A DNA stretch of 64,000 nt, from IMG/VR virus record IMGVR_UViG_3300005941_000003, positions 181,964 through 245,963 of that record. One strand, 5' to 3'. Below, piece after piece: positions 39,416 through 51,254 of the stretch (position 1 is its first letter; each line of letters opens with the position of its first letter). The notes below the pieces were generated by a model. It did not search any database and was not told where the DNA came from. It was given only the letters and a program-made list of their open reading frames with translations. The position numbers were made by a program, and so were the translations under genes.

Positions 39416-40495
39416 TTACCAACCAATGCGTTCCCATGGAACGTCCTTATCACCGAAGTGCCCGTAAACACAATTCTTACTGTATTCGTGGAAGTTATAC
39501 ATATCAAAGCGACGAATAATACCAAGTGGTGTCAAGTCGATTTCACGTTCAATGAATTCCATAATACTACGGTCGTGACCATTCGATTCAACATAGATTG
39601 ATGTTGGTTCCTTAACACCGATAGCATAACTCAATTGGATTTTGCACCAATCAGCCATGTTATCCGCTACCACATTCTTTGCAAGCCAACGTGCCATGTA
39701 CGCTGCACTGCGATCAACCTTGGTTGGGTCTTTACCAGAGAACGCACCGCCACCGTGAGGTGCCATACCACCATATGTATCAACGATGATTTTACGTCCA
39801 GTGACACCAGCGTCACCATCCGGACCACCAATGACAAAATTACCAGTTGGATTAAGATGCCATATAGTTTTATCATCAATCAAATCACCGAGTACGTTTT
39901 GCGCTGCAAGTCTTGAAAGTTCACGCGCTGCTTCTACATTACCTTCAGTGTGTTGTGTAGACACAACAATCTGGTCAATACGCTTGACACGCCCGCCTTC
40001 GTATTGTACCGACACTTGAGACTTTGCATCCGGGCCTAAAATAGCACCACGATGATTTTTTAGTTCTTTTAGAATTTCATGTGAATAATAGATAGGCGCA
40101 GGCATTAGTGTTGGCGTTTCATTGGTGGCGTAACCAAACATAATACCCTGATCCCCTGCACCGAAGTCGTCAGTTCCAAGTGCAATGTCTGCGCTTTGTG
40201 AGTGAATTTCATTGTAGATGTTTAGATTTTCCCAATGAAATCCTTCTTGTTCATAACCAATCTCACGAACTTTATTTCGGACGATTTCTTTAACTTCTTC
40301 TTTCGATACATTAAAGTTTTTTACTTCGCCCGCCAACGTTACGTGATTGGTAGTTACAAGTGTTTCGATGGCAACGCGAGTAGTCTCGTCCCCATTCTTC
40401 AACCCAGCATCAACTAGGGCATCACTGATTTGGTCTGCAACCTTATCAGGGTGTCCATCGCTAACACTTTCGCTAGTAAAAATATAGTTGTTCAT
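39416..40495 (-). CDS. metK: S-adenosylmethionine synthetase
   Basis: FTSESVSDGHPDK, GAGDQG, GGGAFSGKDPTKVDRS. Confidence 0.98.
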   Translation of the reverse strand: MNNYIFTSESVSDGHPDKVADQISDALVDAGLKNGDETTRVAIETLVTTNHVTLAGEVKNFNVSKEEVKEIVRNKVREIGYEQEGFHWENLNIYNEIHSQSADIALGTDDFGAGDQGIMFGYATNETPTLMPAPIYYSHEILKELKNHRGAILGPDAKSQVSVQYEGGRVKRIDQIVVSTQHTEGNVEAARELSRLAAQNVLGDLIDDKTIWHLNPTGNFVIGGPDGDAGVTGRKIIVDTYGGMAPHGGGAFSGKDPTKVDRSAAYMARWLAKNVVADNMADWCKIQLSYAIGVKEPTSIYVESNGHDRSIMEFIEREIDLTPLGIIRRFDMYNFHEYSKNCVYGHFGDKDVPWERIGW

Positions 40496-40565
40496 TTATA
40501 ACTGCTTCCTTATATTGTTATATTGTTCTTCTGTGTGTACACCACGGAGATATCGTTTATTCTTA

Positions 40566-41438
40566 TCAAGTCCCCCAGGCGTTCCCGAATAGAGATATGT
40601 GGAGTCTTGGTGTAAATCTGTATCCTTTTTGCATACAGATGTTTGCGACCTCTTGGACTGTGATATCATATCCTTCACTGCGCCCGCCCATTGGCATAAG
40701 ATAAACCGGACAATCGATGCCATGACTGCGATATTCTGCAACAGCGCGATCAACTTCCTCCACGTCTGTACGATCAGAGACAACAAATTTGAGATACAGA
40801 TTAGTACCCAAAGTAGTGATATAATTGTGTACGACATCAGGTCTAATAGCGTCTTCCCAACGTTCTCCAGAAACGGAGAGTTTAGGCGAGCATGAAAATG
40901 TGAATTTAATTCTCTTTTGGTTTCCAATGTAAGTTCGTAGACTTTCATGTAGAAACTGTGTGGAGTTTGTTTCGAATGTGACATTTTTCAAGTCCTTCAT
41001 TTTCGGATGTTCGAATAGTTCGATGTAAAGTTTCTGCCAAGCAAGTAGAGGTTCACCGCCAGTTAGAATTAGATGAACATCTTGTCCGTTATCTTGGATC
41101 CACTTACCTTCAGGTGTTAGACTGAGTAGTTGTTCGACAACTTCATCAATCGTCTTATCCATAACAAGGTGTCTAAATTCTGGGTAGATGCTTGCATACG
41201 TGTCACAGCCAGTATGAATGATTGGTAGTTCTTCAAACTTAGTAACACGATCCAAGATGCCAGTATTTAGTAGTTCTTCAACCTCTGGGTTGTAGTGTGT
41301 TTTTTCTCGTCCGCGTGGCAACCCAAAGTTCTGACATCGAAAGTTACATCCGAAGGTGCGAAGAAATACGCTGGGAACCCCAACGTACTGTCCTTCACCT
41401 TGCAGCGAATAGAATGCTTCTGAATATCTTAGTTTCAT
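40566..41438 (-). CDS. queE: 7-carboxy-7-deazaguanine synthase (radical SAM)
   Basis: E.FYSLQGEG..G.PSVFLR..GCNFRC...CDT, TGGEP, ETN, SPKL, PRLH. Confidence 0.9.
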   Translation of the reverse strand: MKLRYSEAFYSLQGEGQYVGVPSVFLRTFGCNFRCQNFGLPRGREKTHYNPEVEELLNTGILDRVTKFEELPIIHTGCDTYASIYPEFRHLVMDKTIDEVVEQLLSLTPEGKWIQDNGQDVHLILTGGEPLLAWQKLYIELFEHPKMKDLKNVTFETNSTQFLHESLRTYIGNQKRIKFTFSCSPKLSVSGERWEDAIRPDVVHNYITTLGTNLYLKFVVSDRTDVEEVDRAVAEYRSHGIDCPVYLMPMGGRSEGYDITVQEVANICMQKGYRFTPRLHISLFGNAWGT

Positions 41439-41605
41439 TCTAATTCAATGCCTTCCAATGTGTTTAACACTTTTTGTTTTGCTTCTTCTAGCGTAGTTGC
41501 TTCTACTGTTGCAACAATGCGTGTACCATCTGATTCTAGATCAAAGTCTACAACGCTTTTGATTTTCAATGTAAGCGGCTGTTTAAAAATGATTGTATGT
41601 TTCAT
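41435..41605 (-). CDS. 56-aa hypothetical protein MKHTIIFKQP...
   Basis: ATG 41605 to TGA overlapping the queE start (ATGA). Confidence 0.55.
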   Translation of the reverse strand: MKHTIIFKQPLTLKIKSVVDFDLESDGTRIVATVEATTLEEAKQKVLNTLEGIELE

Positions 41606-41606
41606 A

Positions 41607-41726
41607 TTAAAAATATCCCATCATTGCTGAAATAGCAACAGGTCCGCCGACCATCATTAGCATAATAATCGTTAATGCTAGAGGAAGTCCTTTGCCTGTG
41701 CAGTAGTTTTCTTTATGGTCGTTCAT
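41607..41726 (-). CDS. 39-aa small membrane protein MNDHKENYCTGKGLPLALTII...
   Basis: ATG overlaps the folE stop (ATGA); single hydrophobic helix. Confidence 0.55.
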   Translation of the reverse strand: MNDHKENYCTGKGLPLALTIIMLMMVGGPVAISAMMGYF

Positions 41727-42424
41727 CGCGGTGCAAACTCCTGCTGTAGCTTAATGTTGTCAAAGAATTCTTGTTTAACATGTGGGTTATTGAAGAATGA
41801 ACCCTTTAGCACTGTTGTCTGTGTTAGTGAACTGTGTGCCATAATGCCACGATTTTCACAACAACCATGTGTCGCTTGAATGTAAACACCTACATCATTT
41901 GATCCAGTTGCTTTCATGATTTCACGTGCAATGTCCATTGCAAGTTCTTCTTGCAGTGTACCTCGTCTTGCACACCATTGTGCGATACGTGTATACTTGC
42001 TTAGACCAATCAATTTGTCTGCTGCAATGATACCAATGTATGCAACACCTTTAACTGGTTGGTGATGGTGTGAACAAACACTTGTGAGTTCACTGCGAAC
42101 AACTAGCATGCCTTCATATTTTTCGTTTGTGATATTGTCAGGTTCATTTGGAAATGCAGTTGCATTTGGAGCAGGATTGTATCGTCCTGACATAAGTTCG
42201 TTGACATACATCTTTGCAAGTCTACGACCTGTATCCATGCTATTTGGATCGGTATGACGATCAATTACGAGAGAATCTAGAATACCTTCGAATCCCTCGG
42301 TTAGTTCATCAATTATCATGTCATATTCTTCTGGCATAATGAAGTTTGCAATATTATCGCCTGCCCAATATCGTGCGCCAGCTTCTTCGATCCGGTGTTT
42401 AATAATTTCGGAAGTCTTTCTCAT
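41723..42424 (-). CDS. folE: GTP cyclohydrolase I
   Basis: CSHHH, IGLSKY.RI, RR..LQE, HGC...RG. Confidence 0.95.
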   Translation of the reverse strand: MRKTSEIIKHRIEEAGARYWAGDNIANFIMPEEYDMIIDELTEGFEGILDSLVIDRHTDPNSMDTGRRLAKMYVNELMSGRYNPAPNATAFPNEPDNITNEKYEGMLVVRSELTSVCSHHHQPVKGVAYIGIIAADKLIGLSKYTRIAQWCARRGTLQEELAMDIAREIMKATGSNDVGVYIQATHGCCENRGIMAHSSLTQTTVLKGSFFNNPHVKQEFFDNIKLQQEFAPR

Positions 42425-42455
42425 GTACTATGTTCCTTAGTTAGATGTGGTAATC

Positions 42456-42498
42456 CCACTCATGTTTTATTATAGCATGAGTGGATGTTAGAAGTCAA
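42456..42498 (-). promoter_or_regulatory. folE promoter TTGACT-N18-TATAAT with a 9-bp inverted repeat flanking the -10
   Basis: CCACTCATG (42456-42464) and CATGAGTGG (42476-42484). Confidence 0.6.
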
Positions 42499-43559
42499 TA
42501 GTTTTTTAGAATGTCAATAAGTTTTGTTGCGTGATAGAATTTCTGCACACGTTCTACTTCCTGTTTCATCAAAAACTGCATATCAGAATTTTTGCTCATT
42601 TGCATACGAATGTACGCTTTGATGTTTGCAATGTTCTTCTTTGCTGCTTCTAGGTTTGTAGTCCATTCACTTGGATATTTGAATGTCTCATCCCACATTT
42701 CACTGTAAGATAGACGATCCGGTACCATTGGTATTGCACCCACAACAAGACCTTCGTATACTGAGATACCAAGAGTTTCCTGTAAGTTTGCACTGAATAC
42801 CAATTTTGCTTTACCAAGTAACGTATGGTATTCTGGTTTGGTTAAATTAAGTTCTTGACATTTGATGAACTTATATTCGGGCATTTGTTCAGCAATGTAG
42901 TCAAAAATCTCGGGCTGTTTCTCAGGAGCAATTCTGTGAGGGAATAGAATAATGTCCTCTTTCGCCATATTCTTATACTCACTAAGTTCAGTTTCAATAT
43001 ATTCCATAGGCCATCCTACTTGTCTAATAGAGTGAAGTAGCTGCCTGTCGATATCACGGTCATCGTTCCAGAACGTATTTGTAAACAAGTCGATATGGAA
43101 CTTTGTTGCAAAGAAGTTGTCGTCATAACAATCATACATTGACATTTCCGCGTTACGAACCCATGGCTTATCACCGATTAAGCGACCTAGAAAATCTTGG
43201 GGATCATAGCTACCAGCATGCCAGAGTCCACCAATTCGGAGTTTTATCCCAAGCAATTCTGCCATATATTTCAACTGGATAACAGTGGGATTCCACGCAT
43301 CGGTATAGAGAAAGTAGTCACCATCTTTGATCTTACCTTCACAGAACAGTTTTGCTATTTGTTCTAACTGTGCGCTCTTATAGATATTTGTACCGCCAAA
43401 GTTGAGAAACGCTCCGGGAGTAGTTGCAGCGGGAATGTCTGTGGGACCTTCGATAACTGTAACGTCAATTCCGTTCTGTTTCAACAATGCGGGGAAATGC
43501 GTCTTCCATTGTTTGGTATAGCGGGATTCAACGCTTTCCAAGTCTATAAGATATAACAT
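42495..43559 (-). CDS. Glycosyltransferase (GT-B, GT4-like)
   Basis: FPHRIAPEKQP, ETLGISVYE (Ex7E), VPDRLSY. Confidence 0.75.
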   Translation of the reverse strand: MLYLIDLESVESRYTKQWKTHFPALLKQNGIDVTVIEGPTDIPAATTPGAFLNFGGTNIYKSAQLEQIAKLFCEGKIKDGDYFLYTDAWNPTVIQLKYMAELLGIKLRIGGLWHAGSYDPQDFLGRLIGDKPWVRNAEMSMYDCYDDNFFATKFHIDLFTNTFWNDDRDIDRQLLHSIRQVGWPMEYIETELSEYKNMAKEDIILFPHRIAPEKQPEIFDYIAEQMPEYKFIKCQELNLTKPEYHTLLGKAKLVFSANLQETLGISVYEGLVVGAIPMVPDRLSYSEMWDETFKYPSEWTTNLEAAKKNIANIKAYIRMQMSKNSDMQFLMKQEVERVQKFYHATKLIDILKNY

Positions 43560-43572
43560 TCTATTAAACCTT

Positions 43573-44106
43573 TCAGAGAATGTGTAGATGTTCTAGTGCT
43601 TCGTATCCAAACCAGATACCAAACGCGAGATATGCCAAATAACCAAATTTGAAAACATATCTCTTGTATTCACTATTTCTAGCAAATACAAATACTAATG
43701 CAGCAAGAACTGCTGCTACGCCAGCCAACAACCAATTGCTTGCTGGATTAAGTAAGAGTGCCGAAAAGATTTCAAAACTCTCACGTGCATACACAAAGAA
43801 CACAGTAGCAACCGCTATAACAATGCTACTTGCACTACGAATTTCTTCTAAGTGTTCCTTGATATGTGCAGTGATGTCCTTGCTTTTTACAAACAGATAA
43901 AAGAACAATACGCTAAGAATAGCATACATTGCCCATTCATAATCTTCAAGAACATCGTGTAGGAAATATGCAGCGAGTACGCCACCGATTAATCCCACAA
44001 AACCCGATGCATAGATGTTTGCAGATTTTGTATACTGCGTTAGCATCAAAGTGATGAATGCGATTTCTAAGCATTCAATTAATGTCACCACAAAACTTGT
44101 GATCAT
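43573..44106 (-). CDS. FTR1/EfeU-like iron permease (short form)
   Basis: Multi-TM with IECLE and RESFE (RExxE-type) motifs. Confidence 0.6.
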   Translation of the reverse strand: MITSFVVTLIECLEIAFITLMLTQYTKSANIYASGFVGLIGGVLAAYFLHDVLEDYEWAMYAILSVLFFYLFVKSKDITAHIKEHLEEIRSASSIVIAVATVFFVYARESFEIFSALLLNPASNWLLAGVAAVLAALVFVFARNSEYKRYVFKFGYLAYLAFGIWFGYEALEHLHIL

Positions 44107-44661
44107 TTATTCTTCCTTCAAAATAGAATACACGTTGTATCCGCGATCCCGCAATTTCTGCGCACCACCAAGGAACTCTAGATCCATGATAGCAAGTACG
44201 CCAACTACGTTTGCATCAAATTGCATGATTAACTTAGTAACTGCTTCAAGAGTGCCACCAGTTGCAATTACATCGTCAATGACAAGTACACGATCACGTG
44301 GATTCATTGCGTCAATTTGTAGATGCAATTCATCTTTACCGTATTCTAGTTCGTATGTAGTTGATACTGTTTCACCTGGAAGTTTCCCACGTTTCCGCGC
44401 CATCGCGAAGGGCTTACCGGTGATTGCACTAAGAGCACCTGCCATGGGAAATCCACGCGCATCAAGTCCTACAATACGATCAAACTCAATACCATTTGCA
44501 TTGATATAATTTTTAAACAGTGTTACTACTTTTAGTAGTCCCTGCGGATGATTAAAGATACTTGCCATATCTTGATACATCACTCCTTGTCGAGGATGAT
44601 CTGGTACTACGCGCACCATTGCTTGAATTTCTTCTTTAGTTGGATGTTCAATTACTGGCAT
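44107..44661 (-). CDS. apt: Adenine phosphoribosyltransferase
   Basis: GLDARGF, RKRGKLP, YELEYG, VIDDVIATGGT. Confidence 0.93.
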   Translation of the reverse strand: MPVIEHPTKEEIQAMVRVVPDHPRQGVMYQDMASIFNHPQGLLKVVTLFKNYINANGIEFDRIVGLDARGFPMAGALSAITGKPFAMARKRGKLPGETVSTTYELEYGKDELHLQIDAMNPRDRVLVIDDVIATGGTLEAVTKLIMQFDANVVGVLAIMDLEFLGGAQKLRDRGYNVYSILKEE

Positions 44662-45097
44662 ATTCGATTAACGCTCCGTTTTCACCATCTTCTGAGATTT
44701 CAATCTTTACGTCACGATTTGGATATCTGTTTGCAATTTGCATGTATAGATCATCGGACATCATTTCGCAAGATTTATAATCTAGATCAAGTACGTCTTC
44801 GTTGTACAACTTTTCAAGCCAGCGTTTGAATTGAATAAACTCAATATCGCGGTCATTGTGTGTGACAGTAACAGCCACACGAAAATGAAAAATATGACGG
44901 TGAGGGACGCCAAGAAATGATACGTCATCCCAATCACCTGTCGCTAGTTTAGGATCATCTTTTGCTGCTGGATAGCAGTGAATACCTTCACGTTTGAACG
45001 TAACCCAAATCCATCGCTTTGCTTCATTCATTGATTTTTCGATTGTCATATCTTGTTTGCGTCCTTCATCGCGCATATAATCGTAGTAGTTACTCAT
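44648..45097 (-). CDS. QueD/6-pyruvoyl-tetrahydropterin synthase-like T-fold protein
   Basis: GIH.Y, HRHIFHF, SCE, ISEDGENG; context with folE/queE. Confidence 0.7.
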   Translation of the reverse strand: MSNYYDYMRDEGRKQDMTIEKSMNEAKRWIWVTFKREGIHCYPAAKDDPKLATGDWDDVSFLGVPHRHIFHFRVAVTVTHNDRDIEFIQFKRWLEKLYNEDVLDLDYKSCEMMSDDLYMQIANRYPNRDVKIEISEDGENGALIEYASN

Positions 45098-45279: not shown

Positions 45280-46842
45280 TCAGCCAAATAAATCTGCTAC
45301 ACCTTCTGGTTCAGCATATTCTTTCTTCTTACCCTTGATAGCTTCGATGAATTCTTCTGTACGAATAGCTGGTTCTTCGAATTCCATACCTTCTGGAACT
45401 GTACTAGTGTCTTGGACGCGTGAACCTTCGCACTTGCGCAAAAAAGCGCGATAATCCGTCAATAGCTGCATAGGGTCTTTAGTTTTAGGATCAAATAGAA
45501 CCTCAACAAATTTAGCAAAGTAAAGAACTGTATCTGGTACAGATTCACTTAGAATAGAAGGTTTCTTTGGATCCAAGTTCATATTGGTAATGTCAATTTT
45601 ATCTCTTACCATTTCATATTCGTGATCGAACCTGCGTATTGCATCTTGCATTCCACGGATATGATATTCAGTGTTGTGTGCTTGAACAAGGATATAAGAT
45701 AGACTATCCCAACTTGATTTTGCTGGTTTACCGTTTCGATTTAGCATCCCCGGTTGCATGTAATTAATATCTCGCATGTTTAGGCGATCACCAATTTCAC
45801 CAGAATACATCCACGGCTGTTGGTCCCGGCTCAGGTCCTGACGCCATTTCAGTTGCTTGGTTTTATAACTCCAAGCATTGCCGTTCAAGTCGGGATAGTC
45901 ATACGCCAATCCTTTCGATGCTGTAATATAAGGAGATGCTGCATCAAAAGAGATTGTTATATTTGGATTTACATGCTCTCTTAGTTGTCGCTGGACCGCT
46001 GTTAACATAGCACCCCATGGGAGAACGCTAATACCAAGAGTGTGAATCCAAACATCATCTTGGTCAGCTTGGCCAAGAAGTCCATCATCACGCAAACGAA
46101 TTAGTCTGCGTAAAAGTAGTTCTGCATCACCAGCGTGGTCACCTGCCATAGCATAGCCTTCGAAGGCACGATCACCATACACTGATTTATCATTGAAATG
46201 TTTTACACCCTCATACCACATTTCACTTGTTTGCCAATTAGAGCCGTGAAGTGTGTTCAAGAACTTAGTCTTGCCGGGTGTGCGATTGTTAATGAAATAT
46301 TCATGATTGAAGATAGTTTTTTTCAAACAATCTTCTGGATCTTTAAGACCTGTGCGACCACGATACTGTGGTAGCCATGCCCAAAGAGGAATATCAAGTG
46401 TCATTGAATAGTCACAATATTCTTCAAGCCACTTTAGAATGTCATGTCTTACTTTCTTCCAGTCTGCACCGTCTTCAAAGTTTGTCCAATCAAGTTTCCA
46501 AGCGCCTGAACCGATTTGATACCCGCCACTATCGCCAACAAGAATAGTATGTTCACGATTACGATTAACAACCATGCCATCATCAATTTTTGATCCTTCT
46601 AGGTCTAGGTTCGCATGTCCCGCAGAGTATAGGCCATGTGAATAATACACATAGCCTTTCTCTTTGTCAAAGATGTTAAGACCATCTAGACCGTGTTCAA
46701 ATCCTTGTGGGATTCGCTCTGGCGGGAACATGTCAGTTGTGCCCGCATAATGCTGTGAGATTTTGCGAACATAAAAGTTTGAGATTGCGGGAAGAAAGAT
46801 TGCATACCCGCTATCTTTATTGTTCTTGCCAAAGTCTTTCAT
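45280..46842 (-). CDS. DpdA/TGT-like guanine transglycosylase
   Basis: GDSGGYQ, MTLDIP, HTLG, SFDAASP, C-terminal AHN; no TGT CxCxxC zinc motif; adjacent to QueD-like gene and clamp. Confidence 0.75.
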   Translation of the reverse strand: MKDFGKNNKDSGYAIFLPAISNFYVRKISQHYAGTTDMFPPERIPQGFEHGLDGLNIFDKEKGYVYYSHGLYSAGHANLDLEGSKIDDGMVVNRNREHTILVGDSGGYQIGSGAWKLDWTNFEDGADWKKVRHDILKWLEEYCDYSMTLDIPLWAWLPQYRGRTGLKDPEDCLKKTIFNHEYFINNRTPGKTKFLNTLHGSNWQTSEMWYEGVKHFNDKSVYGDRAFEGYAMAGDHAGDAELLLRRLIRLRDDGLLGQADQDDVWIHTLGISVLPWGAMLTAVQRQLREHVNPNITISFDAASPYITASKGLAYDYPDLNGNAWSYKTKQLKWRQDLSRDQQPWMYSGEIGDRLNMRDINYMQPGMLNRNGKPAKSSWDSLSYILVQAHNTEYHIRGMQDAIRRFDHEYEMVRDKIDITNMNLDPKKPSILSESVPDTVLYFAKFVEVLFDPKTKDPMQLLTDYRAFLRKCEGSRVQDTSTVPEGMEFEEPAIRTEEFIEAIKGKKKEYAEPEGVADLFG

Positions 46843-47598
46843 TTAGTTTCCTGATTTTGCTGGTAGAATGTATTCGTATAGACCAAGACCACTATCGACT
46901 TGGATCATCATCGCACCTTGATCTGAAATCTTAATGCTCATTGATGAAGTATCACCCAGCTTTAGAATTGTAAGAACTGTTGAAAGTGGAAAACTCCAAC
47001 CAGTCTTTAGTTCACCGTTTACATTACGTGCGAAAGTCAAGTCTGCTTTATCAGTTGACGCGTCACCGATTGTGAACTGTAGATCACCATCTACTGTTTT
47101 CACAGTGAACAGTGGATCATATGAACTTAGAATTGCTGCTGTTTGCTGCAAGTCTTTAACTGCTTGCTGTGATGGCATGATTTCAACATCCCATTTTGCG
47201 CCTTTGAAGTTTGCGGTCTTGATCTGTGCATCAACTAGTTCACTTACGATAACACGATAAGTTGAACTTAGAATGCCAGGAATAGTAAAGTTAAATTCGC
47301 TAGGAACTTCTTCGCCATTGCGTTCTTGGCGACCGATTTCTACTTGTGTAGTTACAACTTCGCCTTCATTGTTGCGGCTTTCATAACCTAGATAACCGCT
47401 TAGAACACCAAGACGACCTAGACCGAATTTACCTTCAAACGCTGCTACGCGTTCATGTAGTTTTGCACGAAGAACAACAGTACGATCATCGTCCATCGCG
47501 TCTAGAGTTGTGCTTTCTGCATCTGTAGTTACTTTTACTGCTTGGATGATACCAAGCGAGTGAGTGTGTTTTACAATATCTTTCAAAATGTCACGCAT
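46843..47598 (-). CDS. DNA polymerase sliding clamp (gp45/PCNA-like)
   Basis: 251 aa, beta/alpha pattern ending YEYILPA, near the DNA polymerase. Confidence 0.7.
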   Translation of the reverse strand: MRDILKDIVKHTHSLGIIQAVKVTTDAESTTLDAMDDDRTVVLRAKLHERVAAFEGKFGLGRLGVLSGYLGYESRNNEGEVVTTQVEIGRQERNGEEVPSEFNFTIPGILSSTYRVIVSELVDAQIKTANFKGAKWDVEIMPSQQAVKDLQQTAAILSSYDPLFTVKTVDGDLQFTIGDASTDKADLTFARNVNGELKTGWSFPLSTVLTILKLGDTSSMSIKISDQGAMMIQVDSGLGLYEYILPAKSGN

Positions 47599-47625
47599 TG
47601 CGTTCTCCTATATATTATTAGTATT

Positions 47626-47654
47626 ACTATATCACAAGTCGAAAAAGTTGTCAA
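47626..47654 (-). promoter_or_regulatory. Sigma70 promoter TTGACA-N17-TATAGT for the clamp gene
   Basis: Embedded in the 3' end of the methyltransferase gene. Confidence 0.6.
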
Positions 47655-48204
47655 ATGCTTTTTCAACATCAATCTTTTCACCAATCTTTGGGTTGTCTAC
47701 CCAATGAATTGTATTTGGTGGCATGGTATCAAAGCCCCACATAAACCAAGCATTGCCGAATGTAGGATTGCCCTTACCAGTAAAGTCAACACGGTTGTTG
47801 TACACTAGTGCCGACATACCATATTCCATAAACATCTTTCCTCTTGCGCCACCTTGAAAACTTGCTACTGGAAGTAGTAGCGCAAATGGTTTACCCAAGT
47901 CGTAGCAATGCCGAAAGAATTTATCTTTGAGACTGTATGGTGGGTTCGTTATGATCCCATCATAAACATCATTATGTTCACAAGTAAAGAAATCCCTACC
48001 ATTACTCCCAACAATGCTATAGCCCCACTTAGTAAATCCATCCAAAATGTTTGAAGAAATTCCGCTAGTTGCTTCATAGTATGTCTTATCTTTATTTAGG
48101 TATGGTAGCAATGGTAGGACCTGATCTACAGGAGTGTAACATTCATCACTCTCTGCGTTTCGTCCTAGACTTGATACTAGTTCTGTGTATGTTTTTTTAG
48201 CCAT
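47632..48204 (-). CDS. Amino (N6A/N4C) DNA methyltransferase-like protein
   Basis: DECYTP, DFF, IITNPPYS, FALLLP. Confidence 0.7.
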   Translation of the reverse strand: MAKKTYTELVSSLGRNAESDECYTPVDQVLPLLPYLNKDKTYYEATSGISSNILDGFTKWGYSIVGSNGRDFFTCEHNDVYDGIITNPPYSLKDKFFRHCYDLGKPFALLLPVASFQGGARGKMFMEYGMSALVYNNRVDFTGKGNPTFGNAWFMWGFDTMPPNTIHWVDNPKIGEKIDVEKAFDNFFDL

Positions 48205-51002
48205 TAGAAATCAAACAAGTTATCAAAAGTTTCGCTAGTGTTTGCGTCACTCAAATCCCATTTAAGAACACCAATAAGGTTATCAATCTTCTTGTCGATG
48301 ATAGTCGTTTCCATTAGATCGTGATCAAACGGAAGTTCTTGGAACCATTTTGGAATGCGAGTTTCGTCAATAGGATACGCAATACTTGTAATCTTCATTG
48401 GGTTGTCACGAAGTTTACATACGATAGTTTTCATACCATCAACAATTTCAAGAGAATAACGGTCGCTGTTCATCTGTCGAAGTGTATTCCAATTCAACGC
48501 CGCAGTAACGTGACCTGGCATAGTTACTTTCTTGTTTTCTTCTTCTACTTTACCAAGTTTAAAGTCTGCTGACTGCTTACTTTTAAACTTATCGACCATG
48601 TTTCTAAACTTAGTCAAGTTGTTAACACGCTTTGGCGTTCCCTTTTCCCAACCCGGCCTACTGCGGAATTCTTTCTTGAATTCTTTCACCATTCCGATAA
48701 CGTCACTTTCGTTACCAACAGTTAGTACTTTGATAAGAACTTGCATCAAGAAATCTTGCATGTAGTCTGGCGTATCCGAACGCTTCAAGTCAAGACCCAT
48801 TGCTTTTACTTTGCCGGGTTTCCCGTCTACATCACGGCGAACACCATCATCATCATAGATCAACATTGCATAACGTTTCTTCTTAATAAAGATAGCCATC
48901 GTTGCTGCGTTTTCTCGTCCTGCTGCAATAATCTCACCTTGCTTGCGAGGACAGTTAAAGAATACTTTCATGAAGTCTGGGAAACTTGCGTTCACTTGGT
49001 TCGCAATTTCATCATACAGCTTGAGAACAATTTCTTTGTCCCATGCGATTTCACCACTATCGATTTGATCTTTGTATACAGGATACATAGAATAATAGAT
49101 AGAGTCAGTGTCACCGTAAATTACTGCTGGACCTTTGTAGTCATAGTCACCTGCAATGATTTCATTGGTCTTTGATCCCATGTGGCGAGTAATACAACGC
49201 CCAGACAGTGTAGTTGACTGACCAATACGTTTATCGTAGAAACGACAACCTTGGTTAAGAATAGCACCGTATAGTGAGTTCAAGTTAATTTTCTTCACTA
49301 GCTGACGCTTATCCCAGAATGCAATTTCTTCTGCATTCCCACCAGCTTGTGCTTCTTTCTTCTTCGCTTGTAGTTGCTTACGTTCTGCATACCATCGCTC
49401 AAGCAAACTCGGAATGATGCCTTGTACGTCCTGCTTGAATACTGTACCGTTCGCACTAATCGTCCATGGTAGACCTGAGTTGTATACTAGGTCGTACATT
49501 TCTGCGCCAGTGATTTCGTGCGTACTGCCATCTTCCATGTCAAGATGCAACATATTTGTCTTGTCTTGCCCATTCATGAAACGAAATTCTTCGGTCGTGA
49601 ATGTATCTTCCCATGCTTGTGCAGCACCAAACCCTTTGTTCGTGCCGCCTCTGCGACCTGTCGCAATGCGACCACTGATCAGTTGGTCAGTGTATGTTGG
49701 TCGCAACTGTGCTGTAATAGTCTCGGGTGACATGTTTAGCGCACGAATGATTGCCGGATACAGTGAGTTAATATCGATACCAGATACCCATTTTTGAATA
49801 CCAATTTTTGGGTTAGCAACAAACGCGCCTGCTGCTTTTTGTGCTTCTGCTTCTGCTTCTTCTTCTGGTGTGGGCTCGTAATCATCATCTTCCGTAGCCC
49901 AATCACGGCGCTTGCGATCTGGAACTACCATACCTCGACGGTGTGCTTCGTTGATGATTGCTTGCTCTGTAACAGCAACAGCACCCATAGTCGTTTGAAT
50001 ATTAACTGTGTTATCGTGCGCAATCTCGTTTGCTAGATCAATGAAACGTAGCTTCTTGTCTAGGTTGTCAAGTAGTGCAACGTCCTGCCTGTTGTATTCT
50101 ACAAACTTATAGAAGTCTTGGTTATACAACTGGTCTAGAGTACCTTCATATGCAATCTTACGTTCGCCAAGTTCATATTCACCAATCGCATCTAGTGAAT
50201 AAGAATGCATTTCGTGATATGTATACTTGCGATAAAGTTCAAGATAGTCGAGGTGAATACGACCAAACAGATTATAACTGATTTGATCTTTACCGTATTT
50301 CACCATCATCTTTTCTTTAGGAATCAAATCCCACAAACATAGCTTACGAGTGTGTGACTTAGAAAGCACACGTGTGATACGCCGAACAGTGTATGGAATA
50401 TCAAAACCTTCACTGTTCCAACCAGATAAAACGTCTGCATCGTCAATAAGTGCTAGGAAGTCATTCAACATATCTGCTTCACTGAGATACAAAAATGTAT
50501 TCTCAAACTTGTCGCATAGTCGCTGTGCTTCTTCTAACCCTTCACCCTCACGCATATGTTTAGGTGGGATAACAAATGTTACAAGTTGATCAAGCCACTG
50601 TAAATGTGTAGTAATCGCAGTGATTGGCATAAATGGATCTTCGGGTGGAGCAAAGCCGCGTTCTGCGTCAAAGTCCACCTCGATGTCGAAAAATGCAACG
50701 TTTAGTTTTGGCGAGTCAACATTCAGATAGTTTTCAGCGAGACAGCGAATTTCTGGCTTGATATCACTTTCGTAGATTTTCTTACCAGAGTTGATACGCA
50801 ATTCTTTGTGCATATCTTTAAGGCGCTTTACTTTAATCTCGCGTACTTTTTCTCCATGAATACTTAGATGGTCACCTCGATCATCGCGAATGTAGAATTT
50901 TCTCCATGCTGGATAATCTTGATAAACACGTTTTCCGTTGACACGTTCAACCACTTGAACAATGTCTTTGTCTTTATTATAATATGCGTCTACGTATGAC
51001 AA
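48204..51002 (-). CDS. Family B DNA polymerase (gp43-like)
   Basis: FFDIE, GWNSEGFD, YNRQD, DINSLYP, KINLNSLYG, YGDTDS, KKRY; TTG start after AAGGAG. Confidence 0.97.
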   Translation of the reverse strand: MSYVDAYYNKDKDIVQVVERVNGKRVYQDYPAWRKFYIRDDRGDHLSIHGEKVREIKVKRLKDMHKELRINSGKKIYESDIKPEIRCLAENYLNVDSPKLNVAFFDIEVDFDAERGFAPPEDPFMPITAITTHLQWLDQLVTFVIPPKHMREGEGLEEAQRLCDKFENTFLYLSEADMLNDFLALIDDADVLSGWNSEGFDIPYTVRRITRVLSKSHTRKLCLWDLIPKEKMMVKYGKDQISYNLFGRIHLDYLELYRKYTYHEMHSYSLDAIGEYELGERKIAYEGTLDQLYNQDFYKFVEYNRQDVALLDNLDKKLRFIDLANEIAHDNTVNIQTTMGAVAVTEQAIINEAHRRGMVVPDRKRRDWATEDDDYEPTPEEEAEAEAQKAAGAFVANPKIGIQKWVSGIDINSLYPAIIRALNMSPETITAQLRPTYTDQLISGRIATGRRGGTNKGFGAAQAWEDTFTTEEFRFMNGQDKTNMLHLDMEDGSTHEITGAEMYDLVYNSGLPWTISANGTVFKQDVQGIIPSLLERWYAERKQLQAKKKEAQAGGNAEEIAFWDKRQLVKKINLNSLYGAILNQGCRFYDKRIGQSTTLSGRCITRHMGSKTNEIIAGDYDYKGPAVIYGDTDSIYYSMYPVYKDQIDSGEIAWDKEIVLKLYDEIANQVNASFPDFMKVFFNCPRKQGEIIAAGRENAATMAIFIKKKRYAMLIYDDDGVRRDVDGKPGKVKAMGLDLKRSDTPDYMQDFLMQVLIKVLTVGNESDVIGMVKEFKKEFRSRPGWEKGTPKRVNNLTKFRNMVDKFKSKQSADFKLGKVEEENKKVTMPGHVTAALNWNTLRQMNSDRYSLEIVDGMKTIVCKLRDNPMKITSIAYPIDETRIPKWFQELPFDHDLMETTIIDKKIDNLIGVLKWDLSDANTSETFDNLFDF

Positions 51003-51011
51003 AACTGCTCC

Positions 51012-51254
51012 TTAATGTGTGAATAGATAAACTGCGGTTTCGGGAATGTCATTGATCACGATAAGTTCGTTGGGATATCGTTGAAACGTCCAACGTGAAG
51101 TACTACCAACACGGTTGAGAGTTACCATTTTTGGAGTTTGCTTTACTACTGTACAAACGTCTATTTCACGTGTACCGATTGAAGCCACAACTACTGTATC
51201 TTTTCCGATATCTCTGCCGAACTTATCTTTGTGAACAATTGGTTCTTTTGCCAT
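51012..51254 (-). CDS. Small hypothetical protein
   Basis: 80-aa ORF coupled to the upstream gene. Confidence 0.65.
   Translation of the reverse strand: MAKEPIVHKDKFGRDIGKDTVVVASIGTREIDVCTVVKQTPKMVTLNRVGSTSRWTFQRYPNELIVINDIPETAVYLFTH

Follow-up and report, generated by a model that had tools for sequence, protein, structure and literature searches.

Conserved C-terminal tails resembling clamp-docking peptides on two predicted DNA-modifying enzymes of a marine jumbo phage

In a marine jumbo phage, a DNA methyltransferase and a DpdA-like base-swapping enzyme end in the short peptide that the phage DNA polymerase most likely uses to grip the sliding clamp, and relatives keep and re-tune that peptide. 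Therefore, both enzymes probably work at the replication fork, although this role is inferred from sequence comparison and by analogy with T4 and RB69. The window analysed is a stretch of 64,000 nucleotides from the IMG/VR virus record IMGVR_UViG_3300005941_000003 (positions 181,964 to 245,963 of that record), and coordinates below are those of the window.

The polymerase–clamp locus

The features under study all lie on the minus strand and are as follows.
48204..51002 (-), family-B DNA polymerase, 932 aa; the last seven codons, FDNLFDF, lie at 48207..48227.
47632..48204 (-), NPPY DNA methyltransferase, 190 aa; the core runs to WVDNPK, the 19-residue extension lies at 47635..47691, and the tail FDNFFDL at 47635..47655.
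47626..47654 (-), sigma-70-like promoter of the clamp gene, TTGACA-17-TATAGT with a TG extended -10.
46843..47598 (-), sliding clamp with a predicted two-domain PCNA fold, 251 aa.
45280..46842 (-), candidate DpdA/TGT-like DNA transglycosylase, 520 aa; the low-confidence C-terminal region (residues 475-520) lies at 45283..45420 and the tail VADLFG at 45283..45300.
39416..45097 (-), downstream gene module consistent with 7-deazaguanine synthesis and supply, comprising MetK (39416..40495), a QueE-like radical-SAM protein (40566..41438), FolE (41723..42424), an unknown 354-aa protein (42495..43559), a membrane protein (43573..44106), adenine phosphoribosyltransferase (44107..44661), and an unknown phrog_17812 protein (44648..45097).

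The initial annotation had reported polymerase-like tails on the methyltransferase and the DpdA-like protein, whose genes flank the clamp gene, and this observation is confirmed in the sequence. The polymerase ends in SETFDNLFDF (codons TTT GAT AAC TTG TTT GAT TTC TAA for the last seven residues and the stop), and its stop overlaps the methyltransferase start codon (TAATG). The methyltransferase ends in EKAFDNFFDL (TTT GAC AAC TTT TTC GAC TTG TGA), and the codon differences that had been noted between the two tails (GAT/GAC and TTT/TTC) are real. The DpdA-like protein ends in KKKEYAEPEGVADLFG; however, its linker is mixed acidic and basic rather than purely acidic as had been described.

The polymerase was identified by Pfam DNA_pol_B and exo1 and by phrog_262, and its thumb region aligns to RB69 gp43. 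The methyltransferase has the motif IV sequence TNPPYS and matches phrog_799 ('DNA methyltransferase') at E 3e-31, whereas no Pfam or NCBIfam hit was found. The clamp matches phrog_12062 and is 42% identical to its homolog in phage PA5oct, which one record annotates as PCNA. No Pfam or NCBIfam hit, and no PDB hit by profile, was found for the clamp, but its AlphaFold2 model has a pLDDT of 96.7, and the top 50 Foldseek hits in the PDB are all PCNA (E about 1e-11, TM 0.63-0.74).

The 520-aa protein gave no Pfam (including TGT), NCBIfam or PHROG hit, and tblastn reached only PA5oct-like phages, Phosso, and one Vibrio phage, with no link to known DpdA phages. Its best Foldseek hit is 7ui4, the DpdA preQ0 insertase (E 7e-4), followed by TGTs, but the TM is only 0.29-0.48 on a mediocre model with pLDDT 66, in which residues 475-509 and 514-520 fall below 50. 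The motif GDSGGYQ, of the type that holds a catalytic Asp in TGT, is invariant in 30 homologs. The downstream module was recognised by NCBIfam hits, of which those to FolE and QueE fall below the curated cut-offs. The PA5oct and Phosso neighbourhoods are annotated with QueE and FolE, and similar neighbours (GTP cyclohydrolase I, phosphoribosyltransferase, and radical-SAM genes) are found in three further relatives, L172-L174.

Rarity and conservation of the tails

To estimate how often such tails arise by chance, a 342-kb near-complete relative that is identical in this region (G006) was scanned. A strict tail pattern hits 2 of 460 crude genes, namely the polymerase and the methyltransferase, and 1 of 1550 non-gene ORFs. 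A loose pattern adds the DpdA-like protein and one other gene, an unrelated 283-aa protein, and also hits 13 of 1550 non-gene ORFs. Three of the very few hits flank the clamp gene within 5.7 kb.

Conservation of the tails in homologs, which had been proposed as a check, is strongly supported. The polymerase tail pattern [ST]E[TQ]FxxLFx[FL] is present in every related locus where the full polymerase end was recovered. Methyltransferase homologs align only as far as about residue 158-171, the family core ending at WVDNPK. Of 47 distinct members with an extension of 19 residues or longer, 46 end in a hydrophobic/acidic motif, whereas 2 of 97 with shorter extensions do so; the linkers are unrelated in sequence and length.

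Two motif types are found in the methyltransferase family. The J type, F[DN]xLF[DE]L or more broadly F[DN]xLF[DE][LMF], lies beside the jumbo-phage clamp. The T type, [DN]LxxFF[S] or more broadly [DN]L[ST]xF[FM]x, occurs in T4-like phages 2-3 kb from a gp45-type clamp (PF09116). On one such contig (G005), the polymerase ends in TTLEDFFG and the methyltransferase, 72% identical in its core to that of the window, ends in SDLSAFFS; P-SSM2 gp43 ends in NLDSFFS. No crossed case was seen, and in a quick tree the T clade nests among J sequences. In this family, the tail switches type to match the resident polymerase tail and clamp type.

In the DpdA-like protein, fifteen distinct tail DNAs in the IMG/VR relatives keep [VI]x[DEA]LF[GASR] (in condensed form, [VI]x[DE]LF[GA]) despite synonymous changes at V, D, L, F, and G. 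Distant relatives carry an internal NTFGSLFEVE, NEFNSLF, or SFNSLFDV that mirrors their polymerase tail (NTFSKLFDFE, TFNSLFSFD, and HFDSLFGW, respectively); the first pair is that of L172. The pattern is present in 96 of 120 homologs, against 17.8 in shuffled controls.

Overlap with the clamp promoter and origin of the methyltransferase tail

The initial annotation had also cautioned that the methyltransferase tail encodes the clamp promoter and may be a relic of the polymerase 3' end, and both cautions hold. The promoter matches 11 of 12 positions, and its -35 box, spacer, and extended -10 overlap the methyltransferase codons F-D-N...L and the stop codon, so that constraint on the DNA cannot be separated from constraint on the peptide in the window itself. 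The promoter is conserved upstream of the clamp gene in relatives, either inside or after the upstream ORF. In the relatives L076 and L082, the tail DNA is identical to the polymerase 3' end plus promoter of relatives lacking the methyltransferase, a similarity that a recent duplication alone can explain. Among close relatives the methyltransferase gene is present or absent, and tailed or tail-less. Two groups of relatives (B and E) and several T4-like phages have the methyltransferase without a motif; therefore, the tail is accessory and dispensable.

However, relatives of a further group (C) keep F[DN]xLFE with codons that hold no TTGACA, 0.7-3.5 kb from the clamp gene, and where the promoter spacer is intergenic it has drifted to IDNFTYL. 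T-type tails lie about 2 kb from gp45, with two genes between, and match that polymerase instead. The DpdA-like tail does not overlap the coding sequence of the next gene; only its stop codon abuts the next ribosome-binding site.

Interpretation

The interpretation first proposed, that the methyltransferase and the transglycosylase ride the sliding clamp and couple DNA modification to replication, is partly supported. In the favoured explanation, held with moderate confidence, each of the three proteins carries a short hydrophobic/acidic peptide on a flexible C-terminal linker (F-D-N-[LF]-F-D-[FL] in the polymerase and methyltransferase, V-A-D-L-F-G in the DpdA-like protein), and its most likely role is to dock into the hydrophobic pocket of the phage's own PCNA-fold clamp, as the motifs of T4 and RB69 gp43, gp33, gp55, and ligase dock on gp45. 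The two modifying enzymes would then be held on clamps loaded at or left behind the fork and would act on newly made DNA. The methyltransferase tail probably arose by in-frame capture or duplication of the polymerase 3' end at the polymerase–clamp junction.

The analysis itself establishes that the motifs exist, that they sit on unconserved or low-confidence linkers, that they are conserved at the peptide level, that in the methyltransferase family their type matches the resident polymerase tail and clamp, and that the clamp has a PCNA fold by model. In contrast, binding of the polymerase tail to this clamp is inferred by analogy with T4 and RB69, and it is likewise an inference that the two enzymes bind the same site and that binding speeds or completes modification. 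A complex prediction with a clamp trimer and three tails returned a score of 0.01 and no verdict. In addition, VADLFG shares only the L-F core with FDNLFDF, and for T4 alpha-glucosyltransferase clamp binding was found not to be the main determinant of modification share (PMC13216743).

The strongest alternative, although unlikely, is that the methyltransferase tail is a by-product with no selected function; the gene would have been inserted at the polymerase–clamp junction, would read through duplicated polymerase 3'-end DNA and the clamp promoter, and would end in FDNxFDL by descent and by DNA-level constraint. The promoter overlap, the L076 and L082 tails, and the variable presence of gene and tail are consistent with this view. 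Moreover, group B methyltransferases read through the same -35 box and end in IDIDSK or IDIGVE with no LF, and an unrelated ORF just upstream of the clamp (ORF-X) also ends in TIDSLFEV, MFDNMFEL, or TFDKHFNM. However, the group C and T-type tails, the drifted intergenic spacer, and the 46 of 47 long extensions that end in a motif on unrelated linkers argue against it, and it does not address the DpdA-like tail.

It is less likely that the shared tails are real interaction motifs whose common partner is not the clamp but the clamp loader, a helicase or primase, an SSB, or a factory or compartment scaffold. The clamp assignment rests on analogy with T4 and RB69 and on gene adjacency. Nevertheless, the polymerase is a gp43-like family-B enzyme with its tail in the same place as the T4 gp43 tail that binds gp45 (PMC6212786, PMC2988020), the motif type tracks the clamp type across two unrelated clamp families, and the polymerase, clamp, and DpdA-like genes stay in the same order from PA5oct to the metagenomic relatives.

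Least likely is that VADLFG resembles clamp motifs by coincidence and is a conserved C-terminal element with some other role, such as folding, oligomerisation, or regulation of the enzyme, as the bare L-F match, the hits of the loose pattern elsewhere, and a further conserved acidic element, DDDELRALEEEI, after the motif in the distant subfamily might suggest, since the motif closely mirrors the polymerase tail in distant relatives, resembles the validated T4 motifs SLDFLFG and EPEGLDFLFD (PMC6212786), and lies in a low-confidence, probably disordered region next to the clamp gene.

A more speculative and rather doubtful possibility is that the polymerase–clamp junction acts as a hotspot that tags incoming genes. 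The last codons of the polymerase, the stop codon, and the clamp promoter would form one reusable DNA element, and an ORF landing upstream of it in frame (the methyltransferase, or ORF-X, which is restriction-endonuclease-like) would be issued a working clamp-docking tail at the moment of insertion, while the same methyltransferase gene moving into T4-like phages would swap its tail for that replisome's version. Clamp addressing of DNA-modification and possibly restriction enzymes would then be a modular, exchangeable trait across marine phages, and it could also help explain how transglycosylases that act after replication reach very high replacement levels.

Phage DNA modifications protect the genome only if new DNA is modified before host nucleases find it, and how enzymes that act after replication, such as DpdA, keep pace with a fast replisome is unresolved; DpdA3, for example, replaces all guanines (PMC10516641). 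A clamp-docking tail gives a concrete and testable mechanism, and PA5oct, which carries the homologous DpdA-like motif (SFNSLFDV), is culturable. On this interpretation, the set of phage clamp clients is extended to a methyltransferase and a deazaguanine transglycosylase, and a polymerase-like tail on a disordered linker provides a sequence signature for finding replisome-coupled enzymes in uncultured phages. The tail-type switch between jumbo and T4-like phages is a clear natural example of a short motif being re-tuned after gene transfer.

Comparison with known systems

Phage DpdA subfamilies (bDpdA, DpdA1-4) insert 7-deazaguanines after replication (PMC6884629, PMC10516641, PMC10164549). 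The 520-aa protein is TGT-like by fold search, although only at low TM on a mediocre model, has a DSGG[YF]Q motif, and is linked to FolE and QueE genes, and PA5oct, which has a homolog, is reported to carry modified G (PMC12191111). It differs in the absence of a Pfam TGT hit or BLAST link to known DpdA phages and in its long C-terminal region, and none of the DpdA papers that were read mentions a clamp.

Eukaryotic DNMT1 binds PCNA through a PIP box (PMC9690074), so that a DNA methyltransferase is tethered to a PCNA-fold clamp by a short motif, which couples methylation to replication. However, DNMT1 is a maintenance cytosine methyltransferase with an N-terminal PIP box and has no homology to the 190-aa phage NPPY enzyme.

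T4 alpha-glucosyltransferase is a phage DNA-modifying enzyme that binds the phage sliding clamp (Sommer et al. 2004), co-purifies with gp45 (PMC13216743), and has been proposed to modify DNA alongside replication. The enzyme classes and chemistry differ from those described here, and the 2026 study that re-tested it (PMC13216743) attributes the share of modification mostly to expression rather than to clamp binding.

The closest parallel is provided by the T4 and RB69 gp45 clients with C-terminal or loop motifs. The clamp of the window is not a gp45 family member by sequence, binding to it is inferred only by analogy, and the proposed clients are a methyltransferase and a TGT/DpdA-like enzyme, which were not found reported as clamp clients. 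In both cases, a short hydrophobic/acidic motif sits on a divergent flexible linker, several proteins of one phage share the motif of the family-B polymerase, and the clamp is a trimer-type, two-domain protein, by prediction in the case of the window. T4 gp43 ends in EKASLDFLFG, and the tails of gp33 and gp55 sit on divergent linkers and are interchangeable with the gp43 tail (PMC2988020). Internal placement is tolerated (PMC2988020, PMC6212786), and the T4 ligase loop EPEGLDFLFD, which the DpdA-like tail EPEGVADLFG resembles, binds gp45 with a Kd of 10.7 uM (PMC6212786).

Gene order and related phages

The window is the last 64 kb of a 245,963-bp IMG/VR contig from an uncultured jumbo phage. 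A 342-kb relative, referred to here as G006, is near-complete and is identical in the clamp, methyltransferase, polymerase, and DpdA-like proteins. The closest cultured relatives are the Pseudomonas PA5oct group, in which the clamp is 42% and the DpdA-like protein 38% identical, whereas Sinorhizobium phage Phosso and a Vibrio jumbo phage are more distant. A megablast search of the region against phage genomes gave no match. The genes of interest lie on the minus strand in the following order.

DsbA-like gene
51012..51254 (-), 80-aa ORF
48204..51002 (-), family-B DNA polymerase
47632..48204 (-), NPPY methyltransferase
47654..47626 (-), sigma-70-like promoter of the clamp gene
46843..47598 (-), 251-aa protein, predicted sliding clamp
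45280..46842 (-), 520-aa DpdA-like protein, with its tail EPEGVADLFG at 45283-45312 (-)
DUF465 gene
Module with adenine phosphoribosyltransferase (44107-44661, -), FolE, a QueE-like protein, and MetK (39416-40495, -)

The phage encodes its own SAM synthetase (MetK, E 1.6e-127) and an adenine phosphoribosyltransferase beside the modification genes, which suggests that it supplies cofactor and manages purine salvage for the modification pathways. A 354-aa protein (42495-43559, -) and a 149-aa protein (phrog_17812; 44648-45097, -), both without a family assignment, lie inside the deazaguanine module; since a glycosyltransferase is annotated in the equivalent neighbourhood of Phosso, the base may be decorated further. 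In PA5oct (locus L001:2685-7911), the homologous polymerase is annotated in two pieces, split by a Hef-like homing endonuclease gene, whereas the polymerase in the window is one intact ORF.

Predicted identity of the clamp, the methyltransferase, and the DpdA-like protein

Searches of Pfam and NCBIfam gave nothing for the clamp, the methyltransferase, or the DpdA-like protein, and PHROGs gave nothing for the DpdA-like protein. Sequence-profile searches of the PDB also found nothing for the clamp or the DpdA-like protein; therefore, their identity rests on fold models. With 100 diverse homologs, the 251-aa protein folds at pLDDT 96.7, and every top Foldseek hit in the PDB is PCNA, with E about 1e-11 and TM 0.63-0.74. 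On this basis it is accepted as a sliding clamp.

The 520-aa protein has an invariant GDSGGYQ. Its model, built from an alignment that left out one row from an annotated-record locus, is mediocre at pLDDT 66; the best Foldseek hit is 7ui4, the DpdA preQ0 insertase, followed by many tRNA-guanine transglycosylases, with TM of only 0.29-0.48. Taken together with the FolE and QueE-like neighbours, and with the report that PA5oct carries modified G (PMC12191111), the designation DpdA-like is reasonable, although by sequence the protein is not a member of any described DpdA subfamily (PMC10516641). The methyltransferase matches phrog_799 and carries TNPPY.

Polymerase-like C-terminal tails

The initial annotation noted that the polymerase, the methyltransferase, and the DpdA-like protein end in similar short peptides, and this observation is borne out by the sequence. 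The polymerase ends SETFDNLFDF, the methyltransferase ends EKAFDNFFDL, and the 520-aa protein ends EPEGVADLFG. The shared residues use partly different codons, as had been stated: TTT GAT AAC TTG TTT GAT TTC in the polymerase and TTT GAC AAC TTT TTC GAC TTG in the methyltransferase. The accompanying caveat, that the methyltransferase tail also encodes the clamp promoter, is true as well. The promoter TTGACA-17-TATAGT, with a TG extended -10, lies inside the methyltransferase tail codons, and the TGA stop is part of the extended -10.

The tails are more than would be expected by chance. Among 460 crude genes called in G006, a strict tail pattern hits only the polymerase and the methyltransferase, against 1 of 1550 non-gene ORFs. 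A loose pattern adds the DpdA-like protein and one other gene, and the window's own contig gives the same picture. The only other hit of the loose pattern in the genome is a 283-aa protein ending KFIEGLFNE (G000:C1:158510-159361, +, outside the window), and nothing was seen that links it to the clamp. The 80-aa ORF between the DsbA-like gene and the polymerase ends AVYLFTH and was considered as a possible gp33-like clamp client, since T4 gene 33, a small clamp-binding coactivator, lies next to dsbA; however, no homolog was found in the related loci, and this reading was dropped.

Tail conservation in the methyltransferase family

Conservation of the tails in homologs had been proposed beforehand as a check, and it was examined in 176 distinct members of the methyltransferase family. 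The conserved core ends at WVDNPK. Of 47 members with an extension of 19 residues or more, 46 end in a hydrophobic/acidic motif, whereas of 97 with a shorter extension, 2 do. The linkers differ in length (13-39 aa) and in sequence. The motifs fall into two types. The J type, F[DN]xLF[DE][LMF] (e.g. FDNFFDL, FDTLFDL, FDNLFDM, FDILFE, and FNDLFE), is found beside the jumbo-phage clamp. The T type, [DN]L[ST]xF[FM]x (e.g. NLSEFFS, DLSAFFS, and DLTEFME), is found on T4-like contigs 2-3 kb upstream of a gp45-type clamp (PF09116).

On G005, one such contig, the T4-like polymerase ends TTLEDFFG, and the methyltransferase on the same contig, which is 72% identical to the window's enzyme up to WV[DN]NPK, ends SDLSAFFS. 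The stretches retrieved for three other phages with T-type methyltransferases (P0038, P0041, and P0049) held no polymerase. Other T4-like marine polymerases end NLDSFFS, TLEDFFG, NLEDFFG, and TLDNFFV; P-SSM2, whose distant methyltransferase homolog has no tail, served only for its polymerase tail. No crossed case was seen. A quick maximum-likelihood tree of the cores places the T clade inside the main J-bearing clade and needs several gains or losses, 9 by parsimony and at least 2 forced by well-supported branches; since the alignment is short and the tree does not come from a careful search, it is only indicative. A conserved terminal peptide on a free-running linker, matched to the resident polymerase tail, is the same architecture described for T4 gp55 and gp33 (PMC2988020).

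Tail conservation in the DpdA-like protein

Wherever the DpdA-like gene follows the clamp gene in the 80 related loci, it ends [GTSA][VI]x[DEA]LF[GASR], and fifteen distinct tail DNAs in these relatives carry synonymous differences at V, D, L, F, and G. The 45%-identical subfamily and PA5oct have the motif internally, about 30 residues before an acidic end, where it mirrors the polymerase tail of the same genome. After the polymerase-like motif, the DpdA-like proteins of this subfamily carry a second conserved acidic element, NPDDDELRALEEEI (distant relatives L172-L174 and L001).

Polymerase tails and DpdA-like motifs of the same genome (L172 and L174 are distant relatives whose DpdA-like proteins belong to the 45%-identical subfamily)
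L172: polymerase tail NTFSKLFDFE; DpdA-like motif NTFGSLFEVEE
L174: polymerase tail TFNSLFSFD; DpdA-like motif NKFFDFGD
PA5oct: polymerase tail HFDSLFGW; DpdA-like motif SFNSLFDV

The copy in Phosso ends KIVEGLF. The pattern [FILVM]xx[LFM]F is present in the last 60 residues of 96 of 120 homologs, against 17.8 in shuffled controls, although these sequences are related to each other and the figure is therefore descriptive. An internal position is compatible with clamp binding, since the T4 ligase loop EPEGLDFLFD binds gp45 with Kd 10.7 uM (PMC6212786). The window's tail EPEGVADLFG resembles this experimentally validated loop.

Promoter overlap and origin of the methyltransferase tail

Upstream of the clamp gene, all relatives keep a strong sigma-70-like promoter. 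At 47626-47654 (-) in the window and at the equivalent sites in the related loci L005-L084, the clamp promoter and the tail-coding sequence form one dual-use element. The related loci fall into groups according to how the methyltransferase ends.

Groups of related loci by the end of the methyltransferase
Group A (window, L009, L011): the tail codons are the -35 box and spacer of the clamp promoter.
Group B (L014, L015, L027, and others): the gene reads through TTGACA but ends ...IDIDSK or ...IDIGVE, with no LF.
Group C (L007, L025, L029-L035, L050-L057): the tail is F[DN]xLFE, with codons lacking TTGACA; it lies 0.7-3.5 kb from the clamp gene, and the promoter comes after the stop.
Group D (L076, L082): the tail and downstream DNA are identical to the polymerase 3' end plus promoter of relatives lacking the methyltransferase, which implies duplication or capture.
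Group E (L038, L053, and others): there is no tail.

In L023-L025, L029, L035, L050, and L055 the element is intergenic, and its spacer still reads IDNFTYL-stop, like a decayed tail. An ORF of 186-205 aa (ORF-X), absent from the window, is inserted between the methyltransferase and the clamp, just upstream of the latter, in three relatives (L007:7352-7969, L010:7303-7863, and L033:7356-7964). It also ends in a polymerase-like tail (TFDKHFNM, TIDSLFEV, or MFDNMFEL) encoded over the clamp promoter. No Pfam or PHROG hit was found for ORF-X; its language-model features resemble type II restriction endonucleases such as MamI, MvaI/BcnI, NspV, and MutH/Sau3AI, with scores of 0.88-0.92, which is a lead only. 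It might form a clamp-addressed nuclease and methyltransferase pair.

From these comparisons, the methyltransferase tail very likely originated from the polymerase 3' end at this junction, as the initial annotation had suggested it might. Promoter overlap alone cannot explain group C or the T type. The tail is accessory and has been lost repeatedly, and in the window itself peptide and promoter constraints are confounded.

Possible mechanism

By analogy with T4 and RB69, the polymerase tail would dock in the hydrophobic pocket of the clamp; the thumb region of the polymerase aligns to RB69 gp43. A trimeric clamp would offer three sites, so the methyltransferase and the DpdA-like enzyme could ride on clamps at or behind the fork and modify nascent DNA. 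A prediction of the clamp trimer in complex with the polymerase, methyltransferase, and DpdA tails (ESMFold2, without controls) returned an ipSAE of 0.01, and it is taken neither as support nor as evidence against docking. The proposal of the initial annotation, that both enzymes ride the sliding clamp and couple modification to replication, is supported only in part. The presence of the tails, their persistence on variable linkers, and, in the methyltransferase family, the match of the motif type to the resident polymerase tail were established from the sequences and constitute strong comparative evidence, whereas binding itself, competition with the polymerase, and any effect on modification are inferred. 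Overall, functional clamp docking appears more likely than not, with moderate confidence.

Relation to known systems

In the open-access papers and preprints searched, no paper was found that links a phage methyltransferase or any DpdA to a clamp. What appears to be new, relative to the systems below, is that the proposed clients are new, that the clamp family is different, and that the tail type switches after gene transfer, which as far as was found has not been described. The clamp "tool-belt" and shared tails, by contrast, are textbook for T4 (PMC2988020, PMC6212786). A DNA-modifying enzyme on a phage clamp has a precedent in T4 alpha-glucosyltransferase, whose binding to gp45 has been re-confirmed in vitro, but with limited influence on the share of modification (PMC13216743). 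The binding of DNMT1 to PCNA is the eukaryotic parallel (PMC9690074).
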